Virus record (IMG/VR): IMGVR_UViG_3300017971_000185 | Coordinates: 124,001-188,000 of that record | Reading direction: 5' to 3' (one strand) | Length of the DNA stretch: 64,000 nt | Part shown: positions 25,909 to 48,987 of the stretch, piece after piece | Layout: every line of letters starts with the position of its first letter | Position numbering within the stretch: the first letter of the stretch is position 1 | Position numbers and translations under genes: made by a program | The notes under the pieces: model-generated | What the model was told of the DNA's origin: nothing | Seen by the model: only the letters and a program-made list of their open reading frames with translations | Databases searched by the model: none

Positions 25909-25956
25909 CCCACCTATAGCTGACAGCGAGCCGCCTAGCGGCGTAGGGTGTTTCTA

Positions 25957-27609
25957 ATGGCGCTGGACCAGACGACCAAGGATGCCTACATGCGCCTGCG
26001 GCCTCTGCGTGAGCGGACGGATCTCAAGCTGCGCAAGCTGAAGATGCTCAAGGACACCTTTACGGGGTTCGATGAGCAAGAGCATCCGCTCGACATTCGC
26101 TACTACCAAGTCCAAGGCATCTTGCATCTGGTCACGATGCTCCGGTTTGTGCTTGGCGATGATTGCGGTTTGGGCAAGTCGATCATGGCAATCGCGGGTC
26201 TTTGCTTTCTGTGGGAGAAAGATCCTGATCGCAAGGTCATTGTCGTCACCAACAAGACTCCCGTGGGTCAGTGGTGCAACGAGTTTGCGAAATTCTGCAA
26301 GCCAGGATCCATCAAGGTCATCCGTAACGACGGCAAGCCGAAGGAAAGGTTGGAAGCATACCGGGAGTGGGAGAGGAGCGAAGGCCCAACCGTCATGGTC
26401 ATGGGCTACGCCACGTGTCGGGTTGACTTCTCGCACATTCAGGAGTGGAAGGATTACATCGTAGTCTTCGATGAGGCGCAGGCATTCAAGTCACCGAAGA
26501 CGCAGATCCATCAGGTGTGCAAACACTTGTCTGCGCAAGCGGTGCGGTGCTGGTGCCTGACGGCTACTCTCATACGAAACAACCTCTCCGAAGGCTACGG
26601 TATCTACACGGTGCTTCTCGCTGGCACCGGGATTCAACTGTTCCCTGGCTCACTCACGGCGTTTCTGCACGAATACTACGTGATGCGGCTCCAGAAGGTC
26701 GGCAAGAAGGGACGCCAGATTCCGCTTCCTGTCTACCTCAAACGCGGCTCCGTAGAGAAGTTTCGTCTGCTCATCGATCCGTTCTATCTGGGGCGTCCAA
26801 AGCACGAGGTTGCGAAAGAGCTACCTCCGTTGACTATCCGCATCGAGAAGGTCGGTCTTTCGGCGGCCCAGACCACGAAGTACAACGAAGCGCTTGCTGG
26901 ATTGCTGGAGATCGATGCGACTGGTGAGGTCAAGGAGACGACGGTTCTCACGGCTCTCATCTACTGCCAGGAGATCGTTGACCACCCCGATCTGATCGAC
27001 TGCGAAGGAGATAGCAAGAAGCTAGAGCGCTTGCTCGACATCCTGACGACCGGAGCGTTCGCGGACGAGAATGTGATTGTCTACTCGCGTTTCGAGAAGA
27101 TGGCGACGGTACTGGCGAAGGCTCTGACGAAAGCCAAGGTCCCCTACGTTCGGATTACGGGTAAGGAGATCAAGAAGCTCACGTACAAGGGCAAGAAGGT
27201 CAGCGAACGAGATCGCGCGATGGGGAAATTCAACGACCCCGAGGATGAGACGCGCGTCTGTCTGATCACCGACGCGGGCTCGGAGGCGATCAATCTCCAG
27301 TCGGCCAAGCTCATCATCTTCTACGACACGCCTTGGTCTGGCGGAAATTATATTCAGACAATTGGTCGGATGATCCGCATCGGTTCGTTGCACGACCGTG
27401 TGTACGCGATGCACTTGGTTGCGGAGGGTACTATTGACGAGAAAGTGCTGGGCGTCCTCAAGCGGAAGATGAAGCTGATCGAAGCCGTCATGGGGAAACG
27501 TATCAAGGGCGAGGACGACAGCGATATCGAGGTCGATAGCCGGAACGACATCACCGAGTTGTTCCGCATCATGGCGAAGGACGCGCGGAAGAAACTCAAG
27601 GCGTCGTGA
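25957..27609 (+). CDS. SNF2-family (SF2) helicase/ATPase
   Basis: LGDDCGLGKS, VVFDEAQ, CLTATLIRNN, ITDAGSEAINLQSA..IIFYDTPW....Q.IGRM.RIG. Confidence 0.9.
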   Translation: MALDQTTKDAYMRLRPLRERTDLKLRKLKMLKDTFTGFDEQEHPLDIRYYQVQGILHLVTMLRFVLGDDCGLGKSIMAIAGLCFLWEKDPDRKVIVVTNKTPVGQWCNEFAKFCKPGSIKVIRNDGKPKERLEAYREWERSEGPTVMVMGYATCRVDFSHIQEWKDYIVVFDEAQAFKSPKTQIHQVCKHLSAQAVRCWCLTATLIRNNLSEGYGIYTVLLAGTGIQLFPGSLTAFLHEYYVMRLQKVGKKGRQIPLPVYLKRGSVEKFRLLIDPFYLGRPKHEVAKELPPLTIRIEKVGLSAAQTTKYNEALAGLLEIDATGEVKETTVLTALIYCQEIVDHPDLIDCEGDSKKLERLLDILTTGAFADENVIVYSRFEKMATVLAKALTKAKVPYVRITGKEIKKLTYKGKKVSERDRAMGKFNDPEDETRVCLITDAGSEAINLQSAKLIIFYDTPWSGGNYIQTIGRMIRIGSLHDRVYAMHLVAEGTIDEKVLGVLKRKMKLIEAVMGKRIKGEDDSDIEVDSRNDITELFRIMAKDARKKLKAS

Positions 27610-28559
27610 AGGTTCGCAACACAGGTAGTCGGCCTGTGAAGGTCAAATTCGGCGGGGATCCTGTCACGGTTGTGGAGATCGGCCCCAACCAGATGACCGA
27701 GATCCCTGACGTGCATTGGGATGAGCTACGCACGAGAAAACCGTACTCGGGGCATCTGGAGACCGGAAGGCTCGTTGAAGAAGGTTCGGGGCCAGACATC
27801 ATTCCTGGCGATGGCGATACCGACTGTCCGTTTTGCCATGGACGTGGGTTTGTCTCTGCGGACGGACGACGGGGGAAGCGATGCGATTGCGTGTACAAGC
27901 GTGACGTGTTGGCAAATGTGCGTCGTGTCTGGCCTGGCTACGATCTGATGAAAGCGGCTGTGCTCAAGAAGCCGTCTGTGCTCAGGAAGTACGTCAAGGA
28001 AAGTGCCTGGATCACTGGCGACACGGACAGCTACCGTGCTCATTTGCGTCATGTTGTCACGCGACAGGGGCCGAATTGGTTTGGCCGTGTGCGCACCGAT
28101 TCAGAGATGATGTCTGGCTGGTTCGCGCAAGCCAAGGCCAAGGCTATCGAGATCTATGACATCGACGTGATCGAGACGGAGGCACGCGACCTGGACTTGC
28201 AGGACTTGGCTGAGCCGCCTGAGCTACTGATCATGGTCCTCGGCGCCAAGAGAGCGAGGAACGTGGCTACGCCCGAGGTTCTGGAGGAGACGATCTCCAT
28301 CCGAGAGATTCTGGACAAGCCCACGTGGATCATAGATCAGCCGACCTACAGCCTCGAAGATGAGGCGCACAGGTGCAACTCTCCCGAAGTGCTCGGGATG
28401 CTCGAAAGGTTCAAGCGGGTTCACCTGGAGCCCCTCAAGAGCATGAAGGGCATTCGGCGTCGTGACGGGAACGGCGACGCGGCAACAGGAGCCGCGCCAA
28501 GGGTGACGCGTCCGGCAAAGGGCAGCACGAGTCGGATCGTAGAGGAGAAAAAGGAGTGA
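27606..28559 (+). CDS. DnaC/IstB-like helicase loader with degenerate P-loop
   Basis: Zn-binding CPFCHGRG...CDC followed by an AAA-like layout (DLAEPPELLIMVLG, KPTWII) with no GxxGxGKT; directly upstream of DnaB. Confidence 0.5.
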   Translation: MKVRNTGSRPVKVKFGGDPVTVVEIGPNQMTEIPDVHWDELRTRKPYSGHLETGRLVEEGSGPDIIPGDGDTDCPFCHGRGFVSADGRRGKRCDCVYKRDVLANVRRVWPGYDLMKAAVLKKPSVLRKYVKESAWITGDTDSYRAHLRHVVTRQGPNWFGRVRTDSEMMSGWFAQAKAKAIEIYDIDVIETEARDLDLQDLAEPPELLIMVLGAKRARNVATPEVLEETISIREILDKPTWIIDQPTYSLEDEAHRCNSPEVLGMLERFKRVHLEPLKSMKGIRRRDGNGDAATGAAPRVTRPAKGSTSRIVEEKKE

Positions 28560-30100
28560 AGATTCTCCTCCGGTCGTGTTTCCTGGTTTCCCCGTCCGAT
28601 GACGAGGAGTTGTTCCAGCGAAACTACCTCGCGCTCCTGGCTTCCGATCTGGGATTCGAAACTCCAGAGGATGATCTGCTGTGGATGTTCATCAAGGACT
28701 TCTTCCAGCAGCACATGCATGTGCCGTCATTGGCAACGATTCGAGCCCACTTCGAACGCATCAAAGAGATGGAAGTGGTCGACCGGGTGGAGACGGTTGC
28801 CAATTTCAACCCGCTCACACGCGGTGACTTCGTTCGCCATCTGGAGGAGAAGGCAGAGGACCGTCGTAGTCGTCTGATTCTCGAATACGCCAAGACGATG
28901 GTGAAGATTGTCGAGACCGGGATAGAGGTCCGCGACGGGAAGAACAAGACGTTTCTCAAGGGTGCTGTCGATGCCTGCCGCTATTTCTCGGACCTGAGTC
29001 ATGGAATCCTCGCACCTACGCTTGGCGCGAGGATGTCTGGTGATCTGCTGGCCGACACGGTGGGTTTCAAGGAGCACTACGAGCGCGTGGAAGCCGACCC
29101 GGAGTATGGCATCGGGCTGTTCTCTGGGCTGGAGCAGATGGACAAGGTTATCGCCGGGGCAAAGAAGGGCGAGCTTTGGATCCACGCTGGCTTCACGGGC
29201 GCAATGAAAAGCTCACTTGCCTTGCATTGGGCCTACGTCCAAGCGATCTACTTCAAGCACACGGTCTTCTACTGCTCGCTGGAGATGCCTCTCATCCAGT
29301 GCCGCAACATTGTCCACACGATGCACTCGTTTCACGAGAAATTCCGTGAGGACCGCATCCGTCTGGGCATTCAGGCTCCGAGCAAGAAGCAGACCGATGG
29401 CACCGTGTTCCACTACGATCGGGGGCTCGACTACGAGAAGATCAAGAACGGCAAGCTGTCTCCGAATGAGAAAGTGTTTCTGATGGAGGTGGTCGAGCCG
29501 GACCTGGAGGATGCCTCCAACGTGTACGGAGACATCCACCTAGAAGGAGCCGACCCAGACAAGATCGACTACACCATCGTTGATCTGCGCACGAAGGCAG
29601 AGATTCAGTACGCGAAGCAGCCGTTCGATCTCATATTCATCGACCACATGGGGTTGATGGCTCCCCGGAAGCGGATGGGATCAACGACGGAGAATCTCAA
29701 TGAGGTCGTTCGCGATGTCAAGAAGATGGCTCTCGGTTTCAACCGCGGGATGGGCATTCCCATTGTTGCCTTGTGGCAGATTAGCCGACAAGGATGGCGA
29801 GAGGCAGCGAAGGCCGAGGGCAAGTACAATCTTACAACTTTAGCCTACGCGAACGAAACCGAGAGGAGCGCTGATGTTGTGACCGCTTCGTGGATTGATG
29901 ATGAGTTGAAGGCGCAGGGTCGGTTCTACATGCAGTGTCTCAAGAGCCGTGACACGGCACCGTTCGAACGATTTCCTGTGCGTGTGGAGTTTCACTGTCG
30001 TCGCTTGCTCACGGATCACGAAGGCATCGAGGACAGTGAGGAGGCCAAGCAGAAGCGCAACGAGGAAGTGGCCAACGAGCTAGACGAGTTGTTCGCATGA
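28556..30100 (+). CDS. dnaB: DnaB-like replicative helicase
   Basis: HAGFTGAMKS (Walker A variant), YCSLEM, IFIDHMGLM, LWQISR, ETERSADVV, CLKSRD. Confidence 0.88.
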   Translation: MKILLRSCFLVSPSDDEELFQRNYLALLASDLGFETPEDDLLWMFIKDFFQQHMHVPSLATIRAHFERIKEMEVVDRVETVANFNPLTRGDFVRHLEEKAEDRRSRLILEYAKTMVKIVETGIEVRDGKNKTFLKGAVDACRYFSDLSHGILAPTLGARMSGDLLADTVGFKEHYERVEADPEYGIGLFSGLEQMDKVIAGAKKGELWIHAGFTGAMKSSLALHWAYVQAIYFKHTVFYCSLEMPLIQCRNIVHTMHSFHEKFREDRIRLGIQAPSKKQTDGTVFHYDRGLDYEKIKNGKLSPNEKVFLMEVVEPDLEDASNVYGDIHLEGADPDKIDYTIVDLRTKAEIQYAKQPFDLIFIDHMGLMAPRKRMGSTTENLNEVVRDVKKMALGFNRGMGIPIVALWQISRQGWREAAKAEGKYNLTTLAYANETERSADVVTASWIDDELKAQGRFYMQCLKSRDTAPFERFPVRVEFHCRRLLTDHEGIEDSEEAKQKRNEEVANELDELFA

Positions 30101-30585
30101 CCGACACACTACGAATCAACCTCTGGCATGGCGATTGCCGGGAGAGAATCAAGACCCTCGAATCTGATTCGGTGGATCTTGTCTTGACCGATCCCCCTTA
30201 CGACTTGACATCGGGTTCGGGGAAGGGCGGTTTCATGGGCAAAACTTGGGACGCGACCGGGATTGCTTTCGATCCTGATGTTTGGCGTGAGGTCTTTCGC
30301 GTTCTCAAGCCAGGTTGTTGGGCCAAGGTGTTCTCGGCGACGCGGACGTTTCATCGCGTCTGCGTCGCGATGGAAGAAGCCGGATTCGAAGGCGTGAAGG
30401 ACAACTTGGAGGCGTGGACCTACGGATCTGGCTTCCCAAAGAGCCTCAACATCAGTAAAGCCTTGGCCAAGGCCAAGGAAGATCCCCGCATCACACCTGA
30501 GTTGATCGAGAAGTGGAAGGGGTATGGAACAGCGTTGAAGCCTGCACACGAGATCATTGTTTGTGGAATGAAACCGACTGCTTAG
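30097..30585 (+). CDS. Beta-class N4/N6 DNA methyltransferase, N-terminal catalytic module only
   Basis: VDLVLTDPPY, FRVLKPG, WTYGSGFPKS, GYGTALKPAHE; stops before the variable region and lacks FxGxG. Confidence 0.85.
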   Translation: MTDTLRINLWHGDCRERIKTLESDSVDLVLTDPPYDLTSGSGKGGFMGKTWDATGIAFDPDVWREVFRVLKPGCWAKVFSATRTFHRVCVAMEEAGFEGVKDNLEAWTYGSGFPKSLNISKALAKAKEDPRITPELIEKWKGYGTALKPAHEIIVCGMKPTA

Positions 30586-30625
30586 GTGGGTTTACCGTGG
30601 GAGGCTTCCGTGCTACAACATTCCC

Positions 30626-31255
30626 ATGCCAAAGGAGCGTCGGATTTGTGAGGGTTGTCGTCAGGCTTTCTGGGTCTATCCAGCGCAAATACGCAAAGGT
30701 GGGGGGAAGTTTTGCTCACGTGAGTGTAGTAAGAAAGGGGAACAACGGACGTGCCCGGTTTGCAGAAAGAGTTTCTATGCTCAACGATCACGGATTAAGC
30801 GTGGCGAAGCACGCTATTGTTCTCGGGAATGTGGTAACCCGGCGCGAGGTAAGAAAGGATCGGACAATCCAAACTGGAAAGGTGGCCGGTTCAAACGAAG
30901 CGATGGTTACATCGCAGTGTGGGTGGGAGACGGAAAGTATCGGTTGGAACATGATCTCATCATGGAAAGCCATGTCGGTCGGAGGCTTCGGCGTGGCGAA
31001 AATGTCCACCATGAAAGTGAGATTCGTGACGACAATCGGTTGGAGAACCTGGAGCTTACTGACTGGTCAAGCCACATCCGAGACCACCATGCTCAAAAAC
31101 CAGATCTCACTAAATGGGAGATGGTTGTGTGTATGAATTGTCGCAAGCCCTTCGCCAAGCGCTCATGTCAAGTTCGGAAAACAGCGCACCACTATTGCAC
31201 AAGAGTTTGTTATCTCGATGCTTGTGCGAAAGGGTCTCGGCCGGGAGGCAGGTAG
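30626..31255 (+). mobile_element. Free-standing HNH endonuclease with CxxC Zn-finger repeats
   Basis: CEGC..FCSREC, CPVC..YCSREC, NPNWKGG, VHHESEIRDDNRLENLEL; lower GC than flanks. Confidence 0.85.
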
Positions 31256-31518
31256 TGACGATTCTCAAAGCAGACGGCACTGCGTACCGTGAGCCGGGAG
31301 AACCGTGCGATCATGGCATCACGTTCGATGAGGAAGAGGCGGAACGGATACTTGGAAACTGGGAGCCGCGCGACAGTACTGATTTCGTCATGGGCAATCC
31401 GGCCGCTGCGGAGGTTCGCAGACGATGGCCACGTCTGAATGGCCGGTGCCCTCTGGGCTGTGGTTACGTGGGCATCTACTACGCGAGTCCCGAGCACTAC
31501 ACCCTGGGAGACTGGTGA
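31255..31518 (+). CDS. Hypothetical protein
   Basis: GTG 31255 overlapping the HNH stop; CPLGCGY. Confidence 0.55.
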   Translation: MTILKADGTAYREPGEPCDHGITFDEEEAERILGNWEPRDSTDFVMGNPAAAEVRRRWPRLNGRCPLGCGYVGIYYASPEHYTLGDW

Positions 31519-32180
31519 CGTTCTATCCCATAGTTGATGACCAGGGTGCCATTGCCGAGACGCAGATCTACACGATCTGTTTGGCGGACTGTCCATGGTT
31601 CTACTATGGCTCGGAAACGAAAGATGCTGCGGCTGGGAAGCACTACGGGCTCATGTCGCAAGAGGAGCTAGCTGCGCTTCCCGTGCGTGAGCTACTGGCC
31701 CAAGATGCCGCCTTGTTCTTGTGGGCGACCTGTCCTCGGCTCGACTACGCAATTGACCTGATTCGTGCGTGGGGTTTTCACTACCGTGGTGTCGCGTGGG
31801 TGTGGGCCAAGACACGCAAGGACGGAACGCTCATCCACGGGCAAGGTGTGCCTCCAACGTTCACAAAACCGACGACCGAGATGGTCCTGGCGGCGAGCAC
31901 GAAGCCTCGGGGGCGTCCGTTCAAGATCCAGACGAGCAAGATGGCGCAGTTGGTCGGGGCTCCCATGGAGGGAGAGGTCGTTCCTGCGCCACGTGAGCAA
32001 CACAGCGTCAAGCCCACGAAGTTTCATAGGCTGATCGAGGAGCTAGCCGGCCCAGAACCGAGCAAGATCGAGCTTTTCTGTCGGGGGCGTCCAGAGCCGG
32101 GGTGGCACGGATGGGGTAACGAGTGTAAACCAGCGGAGCCCGTGTCCTTCCATGACTTCGTGCGTGGGGAGTTGAGGTAA
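31515..32180 (+). CDS. MT-A70-family adenine methyltransferase
   Basis: CLADCPWFY (DPPW variant), AALFLWAT, AWGFHY..WVWAK, TTEMVL, HSVKP, KIELFCR, GWHGWGNE. Confidence 0.85.
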   Translation: MTFYPIVDDQGAIAETQIYTICLADCPWFYYGSETKDAAAGKHYGLMSQEELAALPVRELLAQDAALFLWATCPRLDYAIDLIRAWGFHYRGVAWVWAKTRKDGTLIHGQGVPPTFTKPTTEMVLAASTKPRGRPFKIQTSKMAQLVGAPMEGEVVPAPREQHSVKPTKFHRLIEELAGPEPSKIELFCRGRPEPGWHGWGNECKPAEPVSFHDFVRGELR

Positions 32181-32189
32181 GGAGACAAC

Positions 32190-33155
32190 ATGTCTGAAAT
32201 CGGTAGACGACGGTTCTTGCAGTTTCTCGGGTTGGGAGGCGCTACGGCAGCGACGCTCACGACCCCGATCCCTGTGTTTGGGAGCGATGATGGGCCGAAG
32301 CTGTGGACGCCAGACCAGAAGATCGTGGGCGGGCATCTCGTGCTCGTGCCGCCGAAGGACTGGAGCACTCAGAGATGGAAGCATCCGAGTGGGGGCCGGA
32401 TCGAGCTTTCGACAGACGATCCCGAGAGTGGCGAGGCGATCGTGGGACAGGTTGGGCGAGCTTGGCCTACGGTAAGAGACAGGATCTACTGGGATTCGCG
32501 TAGAGAGCCGCTCATAACCGTGGGTCCGCAGCCGCTTCGGCTCAGCCTCGAACCCTCGACAACTCAGACCGTGGGGCAAGGTGTACAGGACAGGCCCCAT
32601 ACGCCTCATGCTGAGCACGCAATCGCGGTTCCGTTGTCCGAGAAGCACACGTCTGAGGAAGCGCATGCGGCGTTCTACAAAGGTGCGCAGGAGCTACGAA
32701 AGCGGTTCAAGGCAGAGTCCTTGAAGATTCTGGAGCGGGTGCCTGTTTCTTTGCGGCAAGATGCTCAGATCGTCACACTCGTGAACAACGCGGTCTACGC
32801 CGACGCGCTGTATGCTCCCGCGCTGTATGAGCAACAGGTTGCTGATCACGTACAACAACCGGGGTTCACGCTGCGTGCTGAGTGGTCGCAGTATGTGGTT
32901 GTGGGCGAAGTCGAGAGAAACGGCTGGCAAGTCTACAGCGAGACGGGTGAGTATCCCATCGAGATCCCGAGCGATCTCGACATGGAATTCTTGCTTCACA
33001 TGGACAAGATGATGCTAACTAGCGTCACGTACAACATCAGCAACAACGATAGCTGGACGGTCGTCACCACTCCGGGCGGCAAGTGGACTATTCCTGGCGT
33101 CGAGCCGCAGACGCTCGGTAAGCCTATCAAGAGACCGAAGATCCTCAAGCCGTGA
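32190..33155 (+). CDS. Hypothetical protein with twin-arginine (Tat)-like signal peptide
   Basis: MSEIGRRRFLQFLGLGGATAATL; AAGGAG RBS. Confidence 0.6.
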   Translation: MSEIGRRRFLQFLGLGGATAATLTTPIPVFGSDDGPKLWTPDQKIVGGHLVLVPPKDWSTQRWKHPSGGRIELSTDDPESGEAIVGQVGRAWPTVRDRIYWDSRREPLITVGPQPLRLSLEPSTTQTVGQGVQDRPHTPHAEHAIAVPLSEKHTSEEAHAAFYKGAQELRKRFKAESLKILERVPVSLRQDAQIVTLVNNAVYADALYAPALYEQQVADHVQQPGFTLRAEWSQYVVVGEVERNGWQVYSETGEYPIEIPSDLDMEFLLHMDKMMLTSVTYNISNNDSWTVVTTPGGKWTIPGVEPQTLGKPIKRPKILKP

Positions 33156-33736
33156 AAGTAGTCACGCTAGCACGCAAGCCGTTTCCTGCGTCGGCGGCCG
33201 AGTGTGCCGTCGAGTGGGGAACAGCGAGTGTGAACATCGGGGCGAGTCGTGTGGGCGGTAAGCCGAGAACAACACACAAACATGGGAACAGGCGGACGCG
33301 GAATCGAGGTCCCACGATGAAAGAGGGCTTCAAGGTCGGAGACTATGCGTCTCCGGGGCGTCGTTACCCCGCCAACCTCATCCTCCAGCACCGGTCTTCT
33401 TGCGAGATCGTGGGGGAGCGCGAGGTTGCGAGTGGGGTTGCTGTACGGGAGCGGAGCGGCGGCAAGACGATCTTCTCCGAGACAGCCAAGCCTCCCATGG
33501 AGAACATGACTTACGGGGAGGGAGGCAAGGAGTCGATCCCAGATTGGCGATGCGCTGAGAGTTGTCCTGTTTCCGATCTCGATGCGCAGAGCGGAATCTC
33601 TACGAGCAAGGGACACGTCCGGCACAATGCGGGATCGTGGAAGGTCCGCAAGGTGGGCAATGTGGTCGCAGCGGTCGAGACTCCGCACACGGACACGGGT
33701 GGCGCATCGAGGTTTTTCAAACAGGTGAAGCCGTGA
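33152..33736 (+). CDS. Stand-alone methyltransferase middle (variable/TRD-like) module
   Basis: VVTLARKP...EWGT..VNI...RV, GRRYPANLILQH, WRCAESCPV..LDAQSG, DTGGASRFF; no catalytic or SAM-binding motif. Confidence 0.75.
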   Translation: MKVVTLARKPFPASAAECAVEWGTASVNIGASRVGGKPRTTHKHGNRRTRNRGPTMKEGFKVGDYASPGRRYPANLILQHRSSCEIVGEREVASGVAVRERSGGKTIFSETAKPPMENMTYGEGGKESIPDWRCAESCPVSDLDAQSGISTSKGHVRHNAGSWKVRKVGNVVAAVETPHTDTGGASRFFKQVKP

Positions 33737-35196
33737 AGGTGATTACCCTCGCCCGAGCGCCGTTGCGCGGGGCGGTTGCTCAGTCTTGCATCGAGTGGAG
33801 CACGGGAGCGATCAACATCGACGGAACACGCATTGCTGGACCAACATGGACGCGAAGCACGGAGTCGTTGGAGGACATTCGTGGCGGAAGGTACGGGTCT
33901 GCGTCGAAGGATCGCATCCCGGTTCCGCCACAAGCGATGCCGTCTGGGGGACGGTGGCCGTCCAACATGGTGCTCCAACACAAGCCGAGTTGCCGCCAGA
34001 CGGGAACGACCACGGCTCCCGGCTACATGATCAACCGCTGGACGGACGGAGCTAAGCCCTTCGGAGGCGGAGCCGGTCATCCTTACGAGGGTGAGAAGCA
34101 GCCAGATGAGAGCGTGACCGTGTGGGAGTGTGAAGAGGGGTGTGGGGTGGCGGGAGTTGATCAACAAGGTGGTCTTCTTACGAGCGGAAAACCTGTAGGC
34201 GCTCGTCATACGGGAGGGACTTTGTTGGCGGGCGGGGGTAACGAATACATGCTGACCGGCTACGGAGACACCGGAACTGCGTCTCGTTTCTTCAAGCAGG
34301 TACAGGAGACAGACATGCATGAGTTACCACAGGAGTTGATCGACTACCTGGAGACGATGATCACTCCGCCAGATGGTGAAGTTTTGATCGTGTCCGACAT
34401 GTCTGCTGTCAACTGGTCCGAGTACGAGGACAACCAGCTACACGGCCTTTTGATCGTCGGGAAGCGGGCGGACGAATTCTCAGGCAACGACTACATGGAG
34501 CAGATCTGGCGAGTGCTCCGTCCGGGTGCTCACGTCATGTTGATCGCATCCGATGAGGAGCCCACGGGACACACCGGGGCGTGTGCTCTGGAGGACAAGG
34601 GATTCGAGATCCGCGACTCTATCTTGCTCGTGCAAGAGCCCGGACGCATCCACTACGTTGCCAAGGCGGCAACGAAGGAGCGCAACGCGGGCATTGTTCC
34701 GTTTGAGCGCAAGGTCAAGGAGAAGCGCTTGTTCCCTAAGCCTGAGCATATGGATGATATCGAGCTGGAGTTTGCAGAGGTCAAGACGGAGGAAGAGATC
34801 GCCGCGTGGGTTGAGGAAGGTGCTTCGCGAATGGAGATCCCGAAGGACCATCGGCAGTGGTTTGACGAGCGCGAGGTCGAGATCGTCAAGAAGAAACAGA
34901 ATGACCATCCAACCATAAAGGCCAAGGATCTCCTCCGTCGTTTGCTTGGCGACTTGCCGGAAGGTTCACTTGTGGTCGATCCGTTCATGGGCTCGGGCTC
35001 GACGGGCATCGCGTGTGTCGAGGCCGGGATGGCCTTCACGGGGATCGAGCTTGAGATGGAAAGCCTCCAAATTGCCGATGCTCGTGTCCGGCATTGGGAT
35101 TCTGCCGAGCTACGTCCTTGGGCCGCAGAGGTAGTTAGCGAGGCAGAACAGCCAAAGCGCAAAAAGCGCAGTTTCTTGCAGTTGCGCGAAAAGTAA
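33733..35196 (+). CDS. Permuted methyltransferase: middle module, degenerate catalytic-like module and SAM-binding module (probable internal start at 34315)
   Basis: VITLARAP...GGRWPSNMVLQH...ASRFF; DYLETMITPPDGEVL; WRVLRPG...ALEDKGFEIRD without DPPY; HYVAKA, NDHPTIK, VVDPFMGSGSTG. AGGAG RBS at 34304 before ATG 34315. Confidence 0.8.
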   Translation: MKVITLARAPLRGAVAQSCIEWSTGAINIDGTRIAGPTWTRSTESLEDIRGGRYGSASKDRIPVPPQAMPSGGRWPSNMVLQHKPSCRQTGTTTAPGYMINRWTDGAKPFGGGAGHPYEGEKQPDESVTVWECEEGCGVAGVDQQGGLLTSGKPVGARHTGGTLLAGGGNEYMLTGYGDTGTASRFFKQVQETDMHELPQELIDYLETMITPPDGEVLIVSDMSAVNWSEYEDNQLHGLLIVGKRADEFSGNDYMEQIWRVLRPGAHVMLIASDEEPTGHTGACALEDKGFEIRDSILLVQEPGRIHYVAKAATKERNAGIVPFERKVKEKRLFPKPEHMDDIELEFAEVKTEEEIAAWVEEGASRMEIPKDHRQWFDEREVEIVKKKQNDHPTIKAKDLLRRLLGDLPEGSLVVDPFMGSGSTGIACVEAGMAFTGIELEMESLQIADARVRHWDSAELRPWAAEVVSEAEQPKRKKRSFLQLREK

Positions 35197-35221
35197 ACTT
35201 CCGCCCGGATTCGGCGTAGAG
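35193..35221 (+). promoter_or_regulatory. ECF-sigma-like phage promoter
   Basis: GTAAAC-N15-GCGTAGAG overlapping the upstream stop codon. Confidence 0.8.
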
Positions 35222-35240
35222 ATGGTAAGGAGACAAGTCT

Positions 35241-35432
35241 ATGAATTTCCTGACCATCGAGCTTCCCATCCCCGAGGCTCCCGAACCGGCCGAGGTTTGT
35301 GAGGTTTGTGGCGGCCCTGGTGTTTCGCTGGGCTCTCTGGGGTCGCGGGAGTATTTTCGTTGCCGTCACTGTGGCAATCAGTGGTCGGCCGGGGAAGAGG
35401 ATCACAGCTACGAAGTTAGCTTCAAGGTGTAG
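35241..35432 (+). CDS. Small Zn-ribbon protein
   Basis: CEVC...CRHC; AAGGAG RBS. Confidence 0.65.
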   Translation: MNFLTIELPIPEAPEPAEVCEVCGGPGVSLGSLGSREYFRCRHCGNQWSAGEEDHSYEVSFKV

Positions 35433-35441
35433 ACTCCTGGT

Positions 35442-35759
35442 ATGAAGACCAAAGCGGACACCATCTTCACAATTCTCAACTTCGTTGTTGCTCTCGCTCT
35501 GACGGGAGTCGTGGCGAAGGTCGTGTTTGCTGACCTTCCGGTTTTGACCGAGTTGGCTCAGGCCAGGACTGAGTTGATACGGGTCGGGACTGAGCTACCA
35601 AAGTACGAGTACGCGATCGAGTCAATTCCAGATCTGGAGTGGGGCACGAAGGCTCAGGAGATGGGTCAAGCAGGCTGGACGCTTGTCTTTGCTCGCCGTG
35701 CCTCCGACAGTGCGGGCGACTTTCTGTACGAGTGCATCTGGCAGCGTCAGGTTCGTTGA
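35442..35759 (+). CDS. Membrane-anchored DUF4177-like protein
   Basis: N-terminal TM; YEYAIES...EMGQAGWTLV. Confidence 0.5.
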   Translation: MKTKADTIFTILNFVVALALTGVVAKVVFADLPVLTELAQARTELIRVGTELPKYEYAIESIPDLEWGTKAQEMGQAGWTLVFARRASDSAGDFLYECIWQRQVR

Positions 35760-36052
35760 TGGCAGAGATCATTCCCTTCGACGCTCTGATCAGCAAGGTC
35801 GATAGCGGCCGACTTCAGAGATCGTCGTGTCTCACGACGCGGATCGTTTATGCGGACGTGGAGAAGGGGATGTTTCGCGGCCTTGTTGATGCCTCCAAAC
35901 CAGAGAATCCTCCCTACGAAGTCAAGATTGATGCCAAGGCTCGGGTATGTCGCTGTACCTGTGAGGACTTCAAACGGAAGGCGGCTCCCTGCAAGCATCT
36001 AGTGGCTTTCGCAAGGGTAGCGCGAGCGATGACGAACGGGATGAGTTTGTAA
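35759..36052 (+). CDS. SWIM zinc-finger protein
   Basis: CRCTCEDF...PCKHLVA. Confidence 0.75.
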   Translation: MAEIIPFDALISKVDSGRLQRSSCLTTRIVYADVEKGMFRGLVDASKPENPPYEVKIDAKARVCRCTCEDFKRKAAPCKHLVAFARVARAMTNGMSL

Positions 36053-36077
36053 ACTTCTTGCCGAATCTCGCGTAGAG
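36049..36077 (+). promoter_or_regulatory. ECF-sigma-like phage promoter (drives the ligase)
   Basis: GTAAAC-N15-GCGTAGAG. Confidence 0.8.
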
Positions 36078-36095
36078 AGAACACGGGACCAGACC

Positions 36096-37271
36096 ATGGC
36101 TATCAGAGACATCGAGGAATTGGTCGCTACGCTGGAGGCTGCCAGCGAAGCCTACTACAACGGCGACCCCATCATGAGCGACGCGGAATTCGACGCGCTC
36201 GAAGATGAGCTTCGTAGTCTCGCGCCGAAGCACAAGTACTTCAAGCGCGTCGGAGCGAAGGCTTCCAAGACAAAGTGGGCCAAGGTCAAGCACGACGCTC
36301 CGATGGGCTCGCTGCTCAAGGTCAACACGGAGAAGGAGCTACACGCCTGGTACGACGCCTGCATCGGAGACCTGAAAGCCTACGCGAAGGGCTTGAAGGG
36401 TCAGGCGCGAAAGGACTTCTTGGCTCGGGTCGAGGAAGCCCAACTAGTCGTGAGTGAGAAGCTGGATGGCGCATCGGTCTCCCTCGTCTACAAGGACGGC
36501 AAGCTCATCCATGCATTGCTGCGAGGCGAGGGTGATGAGGGCGAGGACATTCTGTCCAATGTGATCAAGATGCTAGGTCTCCAGAAGGTTCAAAAGGGCT
36601 TCACGGGCTGGCAGCGTGGCGAGATCATCTTGGGCAAGAAGCTGCACACCAAGCATCTGGGCGAGTACAAGAGTCGTCGCAACGCTGCTGTTGGCATCTC
36701 GCGCCGAGAGTCGGATGCGTCAGCCTGCAAGTATCTGACGGTCAGCCACTACCAGGCGATTCGCAAGGGCGGCAAGGCGATCAAAGACAAGATCACCGAG
36801 TTTCTCATGCTGAAGAAGCGCATGTGTGCCACGCCGTTCTTCAAGCTAGTAGACGGTCCCGATGGTGTCGTGGAGATCTACGAGGAGTACGTCGAGGGCG
36901 CTCGCGCAGCGCTCGACTACGACATCGATGGGCTCGTTGTGGAATTCAATGACCCGGAGCTAATGGAGGTTCTGGGTGATTCGAGCGGTCGGCCCAAGGG
37001 AGCGAGGGCGTTCAAGTTTCCGCATGTAAAGAAAATCACGCGGTTGAGAGATATTCGCTGGCAGGTTGGCTTGTCGGGTCGTGTGACGCCCGTGGCCGAG
37101 TTTGATCCGGTCGATCTAGCGGGAGCGACACTAGCCCGAGCCAGTCTTGCTACGGCTAGGCACGTTGCCAAGCTGAGACTTTTCCCAGGTTGTCGTGTTC
37201 TTGTGTCACGCAGGAACGAAGTTATCCCGCGAATTGAAAAGAACGTGGACGAAGGTATCGATAATGAGTGA
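36096..37271 (+). CDS. ligA: NAD-dependent DNA ligase, N-terminal part (domain Ia, adenylation, OB)
   Basis: YYNGDPIMSDAEFD, SEKLDG, YDIDGLVV, ARAFKFP, WQVG.SGR.TPVA.FDPV.L.G, EVIPRI, then stop. Confidence 0.92.
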   Translation: MAIRDIEELVATLEAASEAYYNGDPIMSDAEFDALEDELRSLAPKHKYFKRVGAKASKTKWAKVKHDAPMGSLLKVNTEKELHAWYDACIGDLKAYAKGLKGQARKDFLARVEEAQLVVSEKLDGASVSLVYKDGKLIHALLRGEGDEGEDILSNVIKMLGLQKVQKGFTGWQRGEIILGKKLHTKHLGEYKSRRNAAVGISRRESDASACKYLTVSHYQAIRKGGKAIKDKITEFLMLKKRMCATPFFKLVDGPDGVVEIYEEYVEGARAALDYDIDGLVVEFNDPELMEVLGDSSGRPKGARAFKFPHVKKITRLRDIRWQVGLSGRVTPVAEFDPVDLAGATLARASLATARHVAKLRLFPGCRVLVSRRNEVIPRIEKNVDEGIDNE

Positions 37272-38181
37272 GCGTAAGTGCCTACGATGCGGGTGCGCCA
37301 TCGCCCATCTTCATTTCAATGCTAAGCGCTGTCCTCCGTGCGCGCGCGAGGTAGCTGAAGCAAAGGAACGCCAGCGTAAGAAAATTGTCTTGGCACCAGA
37401 TGCCGTTACCTGTCCTGTGTGCAAGAGGCGAATGAATTGCATAACGGCAGGACATTTCCGCAAGCATGGCTATCCGACAGCACAAGTATTCAAAAGGACC
37501 TTTTCTCTAGACACTTTGAAAGCTCCTTCGCTCTGTCAAGATCACTCTCAGTACATGCGGAAAAATTCGCCCACAAAAGGTAAGACTCGTACTCTTTCGG
37601 AAAGACGGCGGATGCGTCAAAACCGCCGGGGGAAAGGGGTAGGTGTCTGCGGCAAGTATGAGCGAACGCCAGAAATCCGAGCCCGTATTTCAGCAGGAGT
37701 AACTAAGTATCTCTTATCAAGAGAGGGAGATTTTGCACGAGGGTGGTTTGTCTATTCGGAGAAACTGGACGATGCGGTCTACGTTCGCTCTTCTTGGGAA
37801 GAGCGTGTTGTGGCGGTGTTTGATCTTCATCCTTGTGTTGAGTGGTTTGAAACTGAGCCTTTCTCGATTCCATACTTCTTCGCGGGAGTTACAAGACGCT
37901 ACGTGCCTGATTTTCTCCTTTGGCTGGAGGGAGGGATAAAGGAAGTGTGGGAAGTAAAGCCTGAGGAGTTTTTGAAGTTGGCCAAGAACCAGGCCAAGAT
38001 TGCGGCTCTGAATGATTACACTCGTCAGAGGGGGTACAACGCAAGAGTTGTGAGGCTTGTGGATATAGAGGGGATGGAGATGCAGGTGGGTCTACGACCG
38101 TGGAGAGGTTGTGGCCAGCCTTGGGTGCGGCTTGACGATCCGAGTTATCGCCCAGGAGGAGAAGCAAATGCCAAACCATAG
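37264..38181 (+). mobile_element. Free-standing TnsA-like PD-(D/E)xK homing endonuclease inserted in ligA
   Basis: CxxC Zn motifs, MucR/NUMOD3-like segments, RSSWEER...EPFSIPY...YVPDF...WEVKP; lower GC than flanks. Confidence 0.8.
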
Positions 38182-39202
38182 CTATTTTAAGCCTCCGAAG
38201 CGCTGCCCCGTATGTCGGACGACACTGGAGAGAGACGGCGCGTACCTCAAGTGCCCGAACGATCTCACGTGTCCGGCCCAGGTAGAGGGGAACATCAAGC
38301 GGTGGGTCACGAAGCTGGGAATCAAGGATCTGGGTGACTCGCTGATCAAGGCTTTGGTCGAGCACGGCAACATGAGGGAGCCTGCCGATCTGTACCATCT
38401 GCGGCCGAAGGTACTGGCTAACTTCCGCACGAGCGGCAAGAAGGTTGGCTTCTCGTCAGCGAACCGGATCGTGGACAACATCCAGGCAACGCGGGAGCTA
38501 CCGCTGGCGCGGTTCGTGGGTTCGCTCGGAATCGACATGTGCTCGCGGTCTGTCTGTGAGACCATCTGCGAAGCGGGTTTCGACACGCTGGGCAAGATGG
38601 TGGACGCGACCGTGGCAGATCTCATGACGGTCCCCAAGATGGGCAAGAGCAAGGCTGAGGCTTTTGTGGAGGGTCTTCAGGCCCGCAAGACATTCATCAA
38701 CAACCTCCTCGACGCTGGTGTGCGCATCAAGAAGCCGATCGTGGGCAAGATGACCGGCAAGAGCTTCTGTTTCACGCAGGTTCGCGACAAGGATCTGGAG
38801 CGCAAGATCGAGGCTCAGGGCGGCATCGTGAAGGGCAACTTCAGCCGAAGCCTGTCCTACGTCGTGACGAGCAAGGCAGGGCTCACGAAGTCTGGAAGCA
38901 AGCTGGACAAGGCTCGGCAGCACGATATTCCCATCATCGATGTGGATGAGCTTGAGGACATGCTAGGATCTACGCGGAGGTTTGGCGGCTTGCCGCTGCT
39001 TCCTGATTCTGTACCGTGGGGCACAATCTACGGTCTGCCCTACGATTTGCCTGACGGTCGGCGGGTGTGGCTGTGCCGGGGCAAGTACAATCGTGTACGC
39101 TTCTACACAGACGACGGAGAACAGGTGGGCCCTGAGCAATCCAACGTGGTTCCTGCTGTGGCTTTTGCTATAGCGCAGGGATGGCGACAAGCTCATGGAT
39201 GA
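38168..39202 (+). CDS. ligA: NAD-dependent DNA ligase, C-terminal part (Zn finger, HhH, BRCT) plus an extra C-terminal segment
   Basis: Own GGAGGAG RBS and ATG; CPVC...CPN..C, LGIKDLG, SLGI..C, VPKMGKSKA, GKSFCFT...QGG...V...SKLDKA. Confidence 0.88.
   Translation: MPNHSYFKPPKRCPVCRTTLERDGAYLKCPNDLTCPAQVEGNIKRWVTKLGIKDLGDSLIKALVEHGNMREPADLYHLRPKVLANFRTSGKKVGFSSANRIVDNIQATRELPLARFVGSLGIDMCSRSVCETICEAGFDTLGKMVDATVADLMTVPKMGKSKAEAFVEGLQARKTFINNLLDAGVRIKKPIVGKMTGKSFCFTQVRDKDLERKIEAQGGIVKGNFSRSLSYVVTSKAGLTKSGSKLDKARQHDIPIIDVDELEDMLGSTRRFGGLPLLPDSVPWGTIYGLPYDLPDGRRVWLCRGKYNRVRFYTDDGEQVGPEQSNVVPAVAFAIAQGWRQAHG

Positions 39203-45153: not shown

Positions 45154-45154
<1 letters not shown>
40955..45154 (+). 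CDS. polA: Family A DNA polymerase with 3'-5' exonuclease; intein-containing
   Basis: [46 protein letters not shown]...YG, TAFGRR, NAPIQG|[13 protein letters not shown]. Confidence 0.95.
43160..44425 (+). mobile_element. Intein (422 aa) with LAGLIDADG endonuclease in polA
   Basis: NAPIQG|CLNSDT ... TSPDHRF ... FLGMVYGDG ... [10 protein letters not shown] ... [10 protein letters not shown]|SGAD. Confidence 0.95.
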
Positions 45155-47756: not shown

Positions 47757-48187
47757 GCGTCAAGGACAAGCGATTGTGGACTTTCATCGTTCGCGGTGGG
47801 GAGCAAATCGTGCTCCAGCCGAAGGGCAACATCCCCGAGGAACACGAGGGTGGCCGTTCCGTCATGCGTTTCGTGCTCACGGATGAGGATGCAGAGGCGA
47901 CCGAGACGCTGCTCAAAAATCACGGCTGCGAGGTCGAGAAGTCCACGGTCCGGCAAACGGATGAGCAGGAGAAAGAGCGGCAGGAGCTAGCTGGGGTCAT
48001 GCGCGATGAGATGGTGTTTCCGAGCACCGCATGTCTCGCGTGTACGTTCTTCGATCCTCACATCGAGGGTAACTGTGGCGTGACTGGATGGGCGCCCGAG
48101 AGTGTCGAGTCGTTGCTGGAGCATCGCGACAAGGCAAAGACCGATCTGGCCGAGTGTCCTTTGGAGAAGTATCTGGAGGTCCAGTGA
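47753..48187 (+). CDS. Hypothetical protein (CxxC)
   Basis: GTGA overlap; CLACTFFDP...C. Confidence 0.6.
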   Translation: MSVKDKRLWTFIVRGGEQIVLQPKGNIPEEHEGGRSVMRFVLTDEDAEATETLLKNHGCEVEKSTVRQTDEQEKERQELAGVMRDEMVFPSTACLACTFFDPHIEGNCGVTGWAPESVESLLEHRDKAKTDLAECPLEKYLEVQ

Positions 48188-48987
48188 GTCACGAGATCAA
48201 GCTCATGGACGCCATGGAGGGGCTGAAGTTGTTGGCCTCGGGCTCTGTGGACATGATCGTCACGGATCCTCCGTATGAGTCGCTCGAAAAGTGGAGGGCA
48301 ATGGGCACGACCACTCGACTCAAGAAGTCCAAGCAGTCGAGCAACGAGTGGTTCCCGACCGTCCCCAACTCCTACTTCCCACCGTTTTTCGCTGAATGTC
48401 ATCGAGTGCTTCGCTCGGGCACGGACATGTACATCATGTGCGATGAGGAGACGGGCGACATTCTGAAGCCGATGTTGCGGGAGGTTGGTTTCGAGCTACG
48501 GAAATCGCTTGTCTGGCACAAGGTCGGCAAAGAGGTTGACCAGATCTGTCCTCATTGCAAGCGCGTTTGCGGTCAGGAGTTTTCGCCTGGTGTGCCGGGC
48601 ATGGGCTATCCGTTCCGCAGCCAGTGGGAGATGATCTTGCTCGCGCGCAAGGGCAAGCGTCCAATGCCCAAGGACAAGAGCGTGCGCAACGTTCTTCCCG
48701 TTCCGTGGATCAAGCGTAAAGACGCATTCCCCACCGAGAAACCAGTGGAGTTGTGCGAAGTTTTGATCAGGCAGTCGAGTGAAGAAGGAGAGCTAGTGCT
48801 CGACCCGTTCGCGGGCTCGGGGTCGGCTGGGGAGGCTGCCTACCGGCTCAAGCGAAACTTTCTCGGTTTCGATGTCGAGCAGAAAGCTCTCGACTACTTC
48901 AATGCACGCAAGCAGACGTGGAATGGTGTTGGTTCGGCGGTTTCCGCCGAGCCGTTGGTTTTCAAGTTTTTCGGGAGAAAGCCATGA
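48184..48987 (+). CDS. Complete beta-class N4/N6 DNA methyltransferase
   Basis: VDMIVTDPPY, HRVLRSG, LVWHK, FPTEKP, VLDPFAGSGSAG; CPHCKRVC insertion. Confidence 0.9.
   Translation: MSHEIKLMDAMEGLKLLASGSVDMIVTDPPYESLEKWRAMGTTTRLKKSKQSSNEWFPTVPNSYFPPFFAECHRVLRSGTDMYIMCDEETGDILKPMLREVGFELRKSLVWHKVGKEVDQICPHCKRVCGQEFSPGVPGMGYPFRSQWEMILLARKGKRPMPKDKSVRNVLPVPWIKRKDAFPTEKPVELCEVLIRQSSEEGELVLDPFAGSGSAGEAAYRLKRNFLGFDVEQKALDYFNARKQTWNGVGSAVSAEPLVFKFFGRKP

Follow-up and report, generated by a model that had tools for sequence, protein, structure and literature searches.

Separate, conserved genes for the modules of a beta-class DNA methyltransferase in a huge phage

Described methyltransferases with joined or divided modules

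The closest known systems to the genes analyzed here are canonical single-chain beta-class phage methyltransferases (MTases; PF01555), such as the one encoded at LR745208.1 (locus L005, 5377-6978; L and P numbers are our designations of loci and of further retrieved sequences) and the mycobacteriophage "DNA methylase" genes. These carry, in one chain and in the order A-B-C, a catalytic half (A; DPPY, YGSGFPKS, ...EPIVxARKP), a recognition domain (B; GRWP, Cys pattern, SRFF), and a SAM-binding half (C; YVAKA..ER, HPTVKP, FxGSG), with a single ARKP strand. We confirmed this fused order in about 100-146 canonical ORFs of the fetched loci. In the 64-kb stretch examined (hereafter the window, i.e., the whole 64,000 nucleotides analyzed), A is instead a separate protein, the strand is duplicated (end of A and start of B), a DPPY-less pseudo-half related to A (A') sits between a recognition domain (B') and C, and an additional recognition domain is a separate gene.

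Divided MTases are known in other forms. In the active/inactive paralog heterodimers of the beta-class superfamily, METTL3-METTL14 and ciliate MTA1-MTA9, one partner has an eroded motif IV, activity requires the complex, and, in ciliates, DNA binding is delegated to separate polypeptides (PMC7544214). However, those are two full MT-A70-type folds, whereas here the DPPY-bearing partner is only half a fold, the SAM-binding half is covalently attached to the dead half, and the recognition subunits are homologous to an internal TRD rather than to homeobox or zinc-finger proteins. In EcoP15I Mod2 and CcrM, one protomer recognizes the site and the other methylates it, but these are homodimers of identical complete chains (PMC7544214). 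Natural two-polypeptide MTases and fragment complementation provide a further precedent (PMC3404938), in which catalytic and other essential motifs lie on two polypeptides that must assemble; those are cytosine-5 enzymes with two fixed partners, without a pseudo-half or arrays of alternative recognition subunits. Finally, in Type I (HsdS, M2S1) and Type IIB (BcgI A2B1) systems, DNA recognition is carried by a separate, exchangeable polypeptide, which allows new specificities (PMC3874165, PMC3592466). The partners found here are beta-class rather than gamma-class, no restriction subunit is present, several B genes occur in tandem, and B shows no detectable sequence similarity to any Pfam family, HsdS-type domains included. 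We found no description of the present arrangement in annotated phage records or in the literature searched.

Anatomy of the split genes

The MTase parts are distributed over three intact ORFs (table 1), as the preliminary description had reported. The protein A (162 aa), whose ATG overlaps the DnaB stop as ATGA, has DPPY at residues 32-35, ends ...ALKPAHEIIVCGMKPTA, and matches only positions 1-102 of 221 of the Pfam N6_N4_Mtase profile, at 23.1 bits, which is below the 26.7 cut-off. B (194 aa), whose GTG overlaps the preceding stop, runs from MKVVTLARKP to ASRFFKQVKP and has no Pfam, PHROG, NCBIfam, or PADLOC hit. The third protein, B'-A'-C (487 aa, GTG start), matches positions 36-219 of N6_N4_Mtase with its residues 255-448 (56.5 bits), has FMGSG at residues 418-422, and has no DPPY. 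B and B' are 35% identical over 198 aa (E 2e-26). A and A' are homologous over helix D to strand 6, both in pairwise comparison (30% over 46 aa, E 2e-4) and in profile-profile comparison (probability 89%, E 2e-6). On the other hand, a "C-like stub" proposed in the preliminary description (YLETMITPPDGEVL) has no significant similarity to the C module or to the N-terminus of A, its scores being equal to those of shuffled sequence. No stand-alone C exists in the window, and no intron-like RNA lies between the parts.

Table 1. Coordinates of the MTase modules and of neighboring features in the window
Feature	Coordinates	Strand	Description
A	30097..30585	+	N-terminal, catalytic half of a beta-class MTase fold (strands 4-7); DPPY at 30190-30201; ends just after strand 7, without SAM-binding motif I
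HNH gene	30626..31255	+	Homing-type endonuclease inserted just downstream of A; not part of the enzyme; Pfam HNH_3 and PHROG HNH families
MT-A70 gene	31425..32180	+	Separate, complete MT-A70-family MTase between A and B; Pfam MT-A70, E 1.5e-23
Neighbor gene	32190..33155	+	Unknown function; twin-arginine signal (TIGR01409 hit); stop overlaps the start of B
B	33152..33736	+	Free-standing target-recognition domain; N-terminal VVTLARKP strand, GRYP/GRWP, His-Cys3 pattern
B'-A'-C	33733..35196	+	Fused gene made up of the parts listed below
B' module	33733..34308	+	Second, paralogous recognition domain (residues 1-192)
Internal start	34304..34317	+	Candidate start that would yield free A'-C; Shine-Dalgarno AGGAG (34304-34308) and ATG (34315-34317) at the B'/A' junction
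A' module	34315..34698	+	Degenerate copy of the A half (residues 195-322); DPPY and YGSGFPKS loop lost; own motifs ELxDYLxTMI, RVLxPGAH, PTGHTGACAxEDxGFEIRD, HYVAKAxxERNAG
Insertion	34699..34887	+	Clade-specific, about 63 aa, between A' and C; absent from many family members
C module	34888..35196	+	SAM-binding half; motif X (NDHPTIKA), motif I (FMGSG, 34984-34998), motif II (GIE), basic C-terminal tail
Compact MTase	48088..48987		Another complete MTase of the window

The AF2 model of A (pLDDT 87) shows a four-stranded half fold. In the model of B'-A'-C (pTM 0.75), the N-terminal strand of B' (residues 2-8) has a pLDDT of 97, whereas the variable loops 37-58 and 153-178 are below 50, and the insertion is modeled as strands plus helices (pLDDT 86-97). 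The C module superposes on the C-halves of M.BceJIV, RsrI, and CcrM at rmsd 1.3-2.9 A, but no solved beta-class chain superposes on A' and C together, 270-310 columns aligning only at rmsd 20-25 A.

Conservation and distribution of the split

The same split is conserved in related loci. L004, L006, L007, and L172 keep A, B, and B'-A'-C as separate intact genes at 46-65% identity. Comparison with L172 gave dN/dS values of 0.08 for A, 0.10 for B (whose L172 ortholog is 68% identical), 0.29 for B', 0.17 for A', and 0.16 for C, against 0.10 for DnaB in the same pair; these values are rough because dS is saturated (1.3-3), but they are far below 1 for every module. The MT-A70 gene (dN/dS 0.16) has orthologs in L172 and in the P0002 contig, and the neighbor gene preceding B has homologs at L004 7060-7776 and L172 6043-6879, whereas the HNH gene is absent from L172 and L004.

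The modules define large metagenomic families, and hundreds of uncultured phages share the layout, which is phage-specific. A search with the A' profile among 1.84 billion representatives identified 218 clusters at 50% identity of B-A'-C/A'-C proteins (E<=1e-10). All 120 best homologs of B'-A'-C lack DPPY, and the full-length members (33 aligned) start at the ...ARKP strand and carry GRWP, SRFF, and FxGSG; only 1 of 150 family representatives has a DPPY-like tetrapeptide in A', and it is incidental. The stand-alone A family has 1909 hits, most ending at the same ...EPIVxGRKP boundary, including at least 61 of the 120 best, with DPPY near residue 30, and 22 of 27 stand-alone A modules form one clade (SH-aLRT 99). 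At least 160 clusters of stand-alone B proteins exist, all unnamed or named "hypothetical" by their sources and without Pfam domains. They start with the same strand as the fused B' modules, 107 of 112 end within 14 residues of the same SRFF motif, and they share a conserved frame with three hypervariable stretches. B and B' are old paralogs, each with its own orthologs in other genomes, and the fused B' modules form their own clade (SH-aLRT 95).

Each of 18 distinct loci has exactly one A'-C-bearing gene, but 0-6 A genes and 0-6 B genes; L011 has six of each and L173 five of each. A paralogs differ by inserts right after DPPY. A and the A'-C gene lie together in 15 of 18 loci and are immediately adjacent in L006, although L171 shows no A gene in the fetched stretch and L086 and L087 are too short to judge. 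Natural fusions exist in both orders, A-B-A'-C (L008, P0382, and P0396), which keeps both copies of the strand, and A'-C-A (P0411, P0423, P0435, and P0441). A cis tandem B-B variant was also found in L169.

The internal ribosome-binding site and ATG noted in the preliminary description lie exactly where free-standing A'-C proteins start. A Met is found in the junction linker of 109 of 145 fused proteins (75%), against about 20% expected. An ATG or GTG with a Shine-Dalgarno-like site is present in the window, L004, L006, L007, L008, L088, L167, L171, and L172, while L173 has the ATG without a clear site. The start codon is present in 10/10 loci with stand-alone B and in 0/4 loci without (Fisher p=0.001). 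However, this association is not corrected for shared ancestry, stand-alone B genes could lie beyond the 10-kb flanks, and the conserved Met could be structural.

A possible multi-subunit enzyme and its alternatives

Taken as an inference from comparative genomics, these data best support the main proposal of the preliminary description, namely a heteromeric enzyme with alternative recognition subunits; its other suggestion, a snapshot of circular permutation, is not supported, as the arrangement is old and stable rather than transitional. We favor a modular, multi-subunit beta-class MTase, inferred to be N6-adenine specific, with a probability of roughly 0.62. In this scenario, C, fused behind the dead pseudo-half A', binds SAM and is the single shared scaffold, A supplies the catalytic DPPY half, and B-type proteins are exchangeable recognition subunits, each beginning with the same short beta-strand, which would serve as the docking element, and carrying hypervariable loops. 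In the most likely geometry, which is inferred, A completes the C half in trans to form the only active fold, while A', together with the N-terminal strand of B or B', forms an inactive pseudo-protomer that holds the recognition domain. The A-C interface remains conjecture and, if A' did pack against C, A would be an orphan half without access to SAM. The proposed arrangement would hard-wire the division of labor known for beta-class dimers, although no structural evidence for this analogy was obtained.

The principal alternative, which we consider unlikely, is that A' and C form a complete but catalytically dead, SAM-binding, DNA-recognizing module, A being an orphan half with another role, such as a regulator, a base-flipping reader, or a partner of a different protein. 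Indeed, A' is homologous to A and directly precedes C in the same chain, in the canonical order, the AF2 monomer model is compact and confident, and dead paralog partners such as METTL14 and MTA9 exist in this superfamily (PMC7544214). However, DPPY in A and motifs X, I, and II in C are nearly invariant across hundreds of clusters, as expected for catalysis, whereas inactive partners such as METTL14 have eroded catalytic motifs (PMC7544214). In addition, inteins sit in strongly conserved motifs, HP^TVKP of C and YG^SGFPKS of A, A' and C do not superpose together on any solved beta-class fold, and loci hold many A genes but only one C-bearing gene.

Still more doubtful is the possibility that the parts act independently, for example with A completing or modulating the compact MTase or the MT-A70 enzyme, and B proteins binding DNA in their own right. 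The window does hold these two further complete MTases, and A lies 2.5 kb away from B and B'-A'-C. Yet the other MTases are complete and need no extra half, A co-localizes with the A'-C gene across loci whose other MTases differ, and the fusions and shared B boundaries described above argue against independence. Lastly, decay of a canonical gene broken by mobile elements and duplication, as might be suggested by the HNH gene 40 nt downstream of A and by a neighboring ligase gene also split around an endonuclease ORF, is refuted by conservation (the intact ORFs, the low dN/dS, and the identical boundaries recurring in hundreds of clusters); also against it are the single clade grouping most stand-alone A modules, the lack of intron-like RNA, and the absence of the HNH gene from relatives with the same split.

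Under the favored reading, huge phages would use this enzyme to methylate their own DNA, with one shared scaffold serving exchangeable recognition subunits. In the window, one recognition domain (B') is fused to the scaffold and a second (B) is free; initiation at the candidate internal start would make scaffold without B', to which free B could bind, giving two specificities.

Gene layout and conservation of the split

The genes between 27.6 and 39.2 kb of the window all lie on the + strand and many have overlapping stop and start codons. The window is identical to IMG/VR contigs of 46, 142 and 497 kb and so comes from a huge phage. In this region, an unknown gene lies between the SNF2 and DnaB-like helicase genes and small ORFs lie between B'-A'-C and the ligase genes. 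No promoter-like or terminator-like sites above chance were found between the methyltransferase (MTase) parts.

Coordinates of the features in the window and in related loci (L-numbers)
Source	Coordinates	Feature
Window	25948-27609	SNF2 helicase
Window	28556-30100	DnaB-like helicase
Window	30097-30585	A
Window	30626-31255	Free-standing HNH_3 endonuclease gene, 40 nt after the stop of A
Window	31114-31518	Small conserved ORF (homologue at L172 5753-6043)
Window	31425-32180	MT-A70 methyltransferase, complete
Window	32190-33155	Protein with a twin-arginine export signal, TIGR01409 (homologues at L004 7060-7776 and L172 6043-6879)
Window	33152-33736	B
Window	33733-35196	B'-A'-C
Window	35113-35196	C-terminal tail of B'-A'-C
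Window	36096-37271	NAD-dependent DNA ligase, first gene: Nlig-Ia, adenylation domain and OB fold
Window	37195-38181	TnsA-like endonuclease ORF
Window	38111-39202	NAD-dependent DNA ligase, second gene: zinc finger, HhH and BRCT
Window	40955-45154	Family A DNA polymerase with a LAGLIDADG intein
Window	48088-48987	Compact N6_N4 methyltransferase, complete, 299 aa
L007	9998-12556	MTase subunit interrupted by an intein
L008	6184-8103	MTase subunit interrupted by an intein
L167	13571-15424	MTase subunit interrupted by an intein
L168	12704-13858	A module fused to a domain matching Pfam RE_Eco29kI
L169	6489-8096	Scaffold protein with two B-type modules in tandem, one of them partial
L170	10001-11638	Scaffold protein with two B-type modules in tandem, one of them partial
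L130	9872-10699	A-B part of an apparently split canonical enzyme
L130	11221-11844	YVAKA-C part of the same enzyme

B'-A'-C scores 56.5 bits against the Pfam N6_N4_Mtase profile (PF01555; cut-off 26.7 bits), which it matches from position 36 to the end, whereas A alone scores 23.1 bits, below the cut-off, and matches only profile positions 1-102. B has no Pfam, NCBIfam, PHROG or PADLOC family and no sequence relative in the PDB. DPPY occurs only in A (residues 32-35) and FMGSG only in B'-A'-C (residues 418-422). B and B' are 35% identical, and A' is a homologue of A over helix D to strand 6. The preliminary description had also proposed that a C-like stub follows B', but hhalign and HMM scores for this homology equal those of shuffled sequence, and an alternative alignment of SVHGxI to strand 4 of A is equally insignificant.

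The module boundaries are meaningful because the canonical enzyme exists. A 485-kb uncultured phage (LR745208.1, locus L005) encodes a single chain with A, then one ...EPIVMARKP strand, the B-type domain, SRFF, YVAKAS..DR, HPTVKP and FLGSG, and about 100-146 such A-B-C ORFs are present in the loci fetched later. In these chains the end of the A profile and the start of the B profile overlap on one strand, while in the split system both A (C-terminus) and B (N-terminus) carry a copy of that strand. In another locus (L130), a canonical enzyme is apparently split in a different way, as A-B and then YVAKA-C about 500 nt later, with no A'.

The split is conserved in related loci. Locus L004 (46% identity) has DnaB, A, an unrelated gene, the twin-arginine protein, B'-A'-C, a phosphatase-like gene and B, all intact and with neither HNH nor MT-A70 gene. 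L006 has A, B'-A'-C and B back to back, and L007 has the same three genes, with an intein in B'-A'-C. L172 (61-65% identity) has A, MT-A70, three B genes between MT-A70 and B'-A'-C, including the orthologue of the window's B (68% identical), and B'-A'-C; a fourth B-like ORF lies at the locus start. Between the window and L172, dN/dS is 0.08 for A, 0.10 for B, 0.29 for B', 0.17 for A' and 0.16 for C, with control values of 0.10 for DnaB and 0.16 for MT-A70. These values are rough, as dS is saturated (1.3-3), but they are far from neutral. Together with the identical module boundaries, these data led us to reject decay or pseudogenization.

The HNH gene did not cause the split either, because it is absent from L172 and L004, relatives with the same split; it is probably a recent mobile insertion unrelated to the origin of the split. 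Joining of A to B by an intron or an intein was also rejected: there is no Rfam match in 29500-39500 at E<=0.1, A ends 5-6 residues after its Cys and has no room for an intein, A and B are not adjacent in the window, and in L006 the A gene stops 3 nt before the B'-A'-C start. Relatives do carry true inteins, but inside the modules and not at their boundaries: in P0423, P0435, L007, L008 and L167 they interrupt MTase subunits at the strongly conserved motifs NFHP^TVKP (in C) and YG^SGFPKS (in A), and none was seen in A'. Finally, a tblastn search of the window with the C module found only B'-A'-C and the complete compact MTase, and no C-only ORF appeared in the split loci.

Some neighbors are conserved as well. 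The MT-A70 enzyme is conserved in L172 and the P0002 contig. The twin-arginine protein is a conserved neighbor of the MTase parts without a family match, and its L172 homologue lacks the signal. The small ORF between the HNH and MT-A70 genes has C-terminal ~70 residues (…HGITFDEEEAERILG … YYASPEHYTLGDW) with a homologue in L172 and no family match. The three-gene layout of the ligase region is shared by relatives, whereas L004 has a single 648-aa ligase. Relatives also carry inteins in DnaB, which the window's DnaB lacks.

Distribution of the modules and a candidate internal start

All 120 best homologues of B'-A'-C (32-100% identity; 63% or less beyond the window's own and one near-identical cluster) lack DPPY, and full-length members begin M(K/R)VVT(L/V)ARKP and have GRWP, SRFF and FxGSG. 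Among proteins of 89-283 aa, 1909 match A at E<=1e-5, and most of the best 120 end at ...ALKPAWEPIVxGRKP plus 0-3 residues, with DPPY near residue 30. In addition, 160 clusters of about 190-220 aa match B end to end, every one of which is unnamed or named "hypothetical protein" by its source and none of which has a Pfam domain. A profile of A' alone finds 218 clusters at 50% identity at E<=1e-10 among 1.84 billion representatives, although these counts depend on word-filtered searches. The best 150 comprise 80 B-A'-C, 48 A'-C, 4 A'-C-A, 2 A-B-A'-C, 1 B-A'-C-A and 15 fragments. No [DNS]PP[YFWH] lies in the A' segment of the window protein or of 149 of 150 relatives, and the single DPPY-like tetrapeptide is incidental. 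Most family members end in an acidic tail with the motif SLxDFFG (or LxDLFGF), while the window clade has a basic RKKRSFLQLREK tail instead.

The distribution is narrow. In 185,579 species-representative genomes only one true locus was found, on a MAG contig (L173), and in 50,697 phage records no record covers 80% or more of B'-A'-C, the listed best matches lying in ordinary methyltransferase genes. No near relatives were found among cultured phages: DNA search finds only the MT-A70 gene in Brevundimonas jumbo phages, and protein searches find only canonical enzymes. Scans of viral, metagenome and genome contigs with degenerate patterns returned mostly canonical MTases and only about 12 true split loci, the other loci coming from exact-protein look-ups. 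Contigs carrying the system reach 435-619 kb and share the SNF2 - DnaB - ... - ligase neighborhood.

By annotating all fetched loci with HMMs of the four modules, we obtained 18 distinct split loci. Each has exactly one gene carrying A'-C, whereas the numbers of A and B vary, within the limits of the 10-kb flanks on which these counts depend. In L011 every A has DPPY and a different insert just after it (some are Cys-rich), every B starts MI(V/I)ITVARKPL, and five of the six B end in ..RFFK(Q/R).. within a few residues of the stop. In L168 the A module is fused to a domain that could be a nuclease or a homing endonuclease, and the tandem B-type modules of L169 and L170 are a cis version of multispecificity. 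A simple A | B-C split without A' was not seen, the "B-C" ORFs lying at contig ends.

Numbers of A and stand-alone B genes and type of scaffold gene in split loci
Locus	A genes	Stand-alone B genes	Scaffold gene
L166, L168, L169, L170	1	0	B-A'-C
Window, L004, L006, L007	1	1	B-A'-C
L088	1	5	B-A'-C
L090	1	4	A'-C
L086 (short contig)	none seen	5	A'-C
L011	6	6	A'-C
L173	5	5	B-A'-C

In phylogenetic trees, 22 of 27 stand-alone A modules form one clade (SH-aLRT 99). The fused B' of the window clade forms its own clade (SH-aLRT 95), and the window's B sits with L172's B (SH-aLRT 99) inside a group of stand-alone B proteins from L004, L007, L088 and L167. B and B' are therefore old paralogues, each kept separately.

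Across 113 stand-alone B proteins, the N-terminal strand, G.G.LNI..(C)RI, GRWP.N..L.H..C, W.C...CP, QSG and GGASRFFKQ are conserved, whereas residues 36-68, about 93-120 and 149-178 (window B numbering) are hypervariable in sequence, the last with variable length too. These correspond to the low-confidence loops of the predicted B' structure (37-58 and 153-178). Of 112 stand-alone B proteins, 107 end within 14 residues of SRFF. The conserved His and three Cys suggest a structural metal site.

The linker between SRFF and the first helix of A' is poorly conserved, yet 109 of 145 fused proteins have a Met there, against about 20% expected, which mostly lies 6-7 residues before the (D/E)L..YL motif, exactly where free A'-C proteins begin. 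At the DNA level, the window, L004, L006, L007, L008, L088, L167 and L172 have an ATG with AGGAG, GAGG or AAGG 6-8 nt upstream, L171 has a GTG with GGAG, and L173 has an ATG without a clear site, while L166, L168, L169 and L170 have no start codon there. The ten loci with the start all have at least one stand-alone B and the four without it have none (Fisher p=0.001, not corrected for relatedness), as expected if free A'-C is made in order to accept free B subunits.

Predicted structures and a possible assembly

The predicted structure of A (60-sequence alignment; pLDDT 87) consists of helix, strand 4, helix D, strand 5, helix E, strand 6 and strand 7, that is, half a methyltransferase fold. 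B'-A'-C (88 sequences) is predicted with pLDDT 83 and pTM 0.75, the N-terminal strand (residues 2-8) having pLDDT 97, and A' and C being above 90. C (307-470) superposes on the C-halves of M.BceJIV, RsrI, CcrM and M1.HpyAVI at rmsd 1.3-2.9 A, and A' (190-306) matches class-I MTase domains at Z about 5.5. Foldseek and VIA searches with the whole model gave only half-domain matches, because of the permuted layout, and no beta-class chain superposes on A' and C at once, although their order in the chain is canonical: Foldseek aligns 270-310 columns only at rmsd 20-25 A and TM 0.12-0.15. Without inspection of the coordinates, this is weak evidence that A' is not packed against C in the canonical way.

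Both indispensable elements of the chemistry are conserved, but on different chains: DPPY with the YGSGFPKS loop in A, and motifs X, I and II in C, while A' has lost both catalytic loops. The simplest functional model, whose geometry is inferred from comparative data without activity, complex or expression evidence, is that A completes C in trans to give the only active fold, and that A', plus the strand contributed by B or B', forms an inactive pseudo-protomer that carries the recognition domain. This parallels the recognition protomer of EcoP15I Mod2 and the dead partners METTL14 and MTA9 (PMC7544214). Fragment complementation and natural two-polypeptide enzymes show that MTase folds can assemble this way (PMC3404938). 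Physical association is supported, only indirectly, by synteny and by natural fusions in both orders, A-B-A'-C, which keeps both strands, and A'-C-A. On the other hand, A' and C may form a dead, SAM-binding fold and A may be an orphan; this would leave DPPY without SAM and we consider it less likely, but it is not excluded.

A more far-reaching scenario, which we regard as tentative, is that huge phages run a plug-and-play methylation machine, in which one shared SAM-binding scaffold (A'-C) serves a library of catalytic heads (A) and recognition subunits (B). The B subunits would dock by beta-strand complementation, so that a few short genes give many methylation specificities, and the conserved internal start would set the ratio of TRD-fused to free scaffold. 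This would be the first beta-class (Type II-like) counterpart of exchangeable HsdS subunits, and a natural case of an MTase active site assembled in trans next to a built-in pseudo-protomer.

Relation to known methyltransferases

The modules belong to the beta-class N6_N4 family, but no single chain carries the family's defining motif pair, motif IV (D/N/S)PP(Y/F/W) and motif I FxGxG in the order IV ... TRD ... X-I; only the set does so collectively. As in the naturally split MTases M.AquI and M.EcoHK31I, essential motifs are divided between separately encoded polypeptides, and this is conserved across loci. As in METTL3-METTL14, there is a paralogous partner with an eroded catalytic motif, since A' is homologous to A and lacks DPPY and the YGSGFPKS loop, but there are not two complete MTase folds, one per subunit: A is a predicted four-stranded half fold with no C half, and only one C module exists per locus. 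Unlike Type I and Type IIB specificity subunits, B shows no detectable sequence similarity to HsdS TRDs (Pfam Methylase_S), and is homologous to the internal TRD of canonical beta-class enzymes.

The layout combines four features known separately, namely split MTases (M.AquI, M.EcoHK31I), dead paralogue partners (METTL14, MTA9), separate specificity subunits (Type I, BcgI) and multispecific phage MTases. What is new is the form, with half-fold catalytic subunits, a scaffold made of a pseudo-half fused to the SAM half, and arrays of free TRD genes with a docking strand, of which our literature searches found no description. The proposed assembly would also assign a function to at least 160 protein clusters, and probably many more, that their sources leave unnamed or call "hypothetical protein".

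If the parts assemble as proposed, they would offer a naturally modular scaffold for programmable methylation tools, a use already made of engineered split MTases (PMC3404938), and a natural system for testing the open question of why beta-class MTases need dimers and how labor is divided between protomers (PMC7544214). This would be a widespread, undescribed way of building a DNA adenine methyltransferase, with an active site split over two polypeptides, a permanent pseudo-protomer, and free-standing recognition subunits encoded in arrays. It would also explain how huge phages can protect very large genomes against many host restriction systems with little coding cost.
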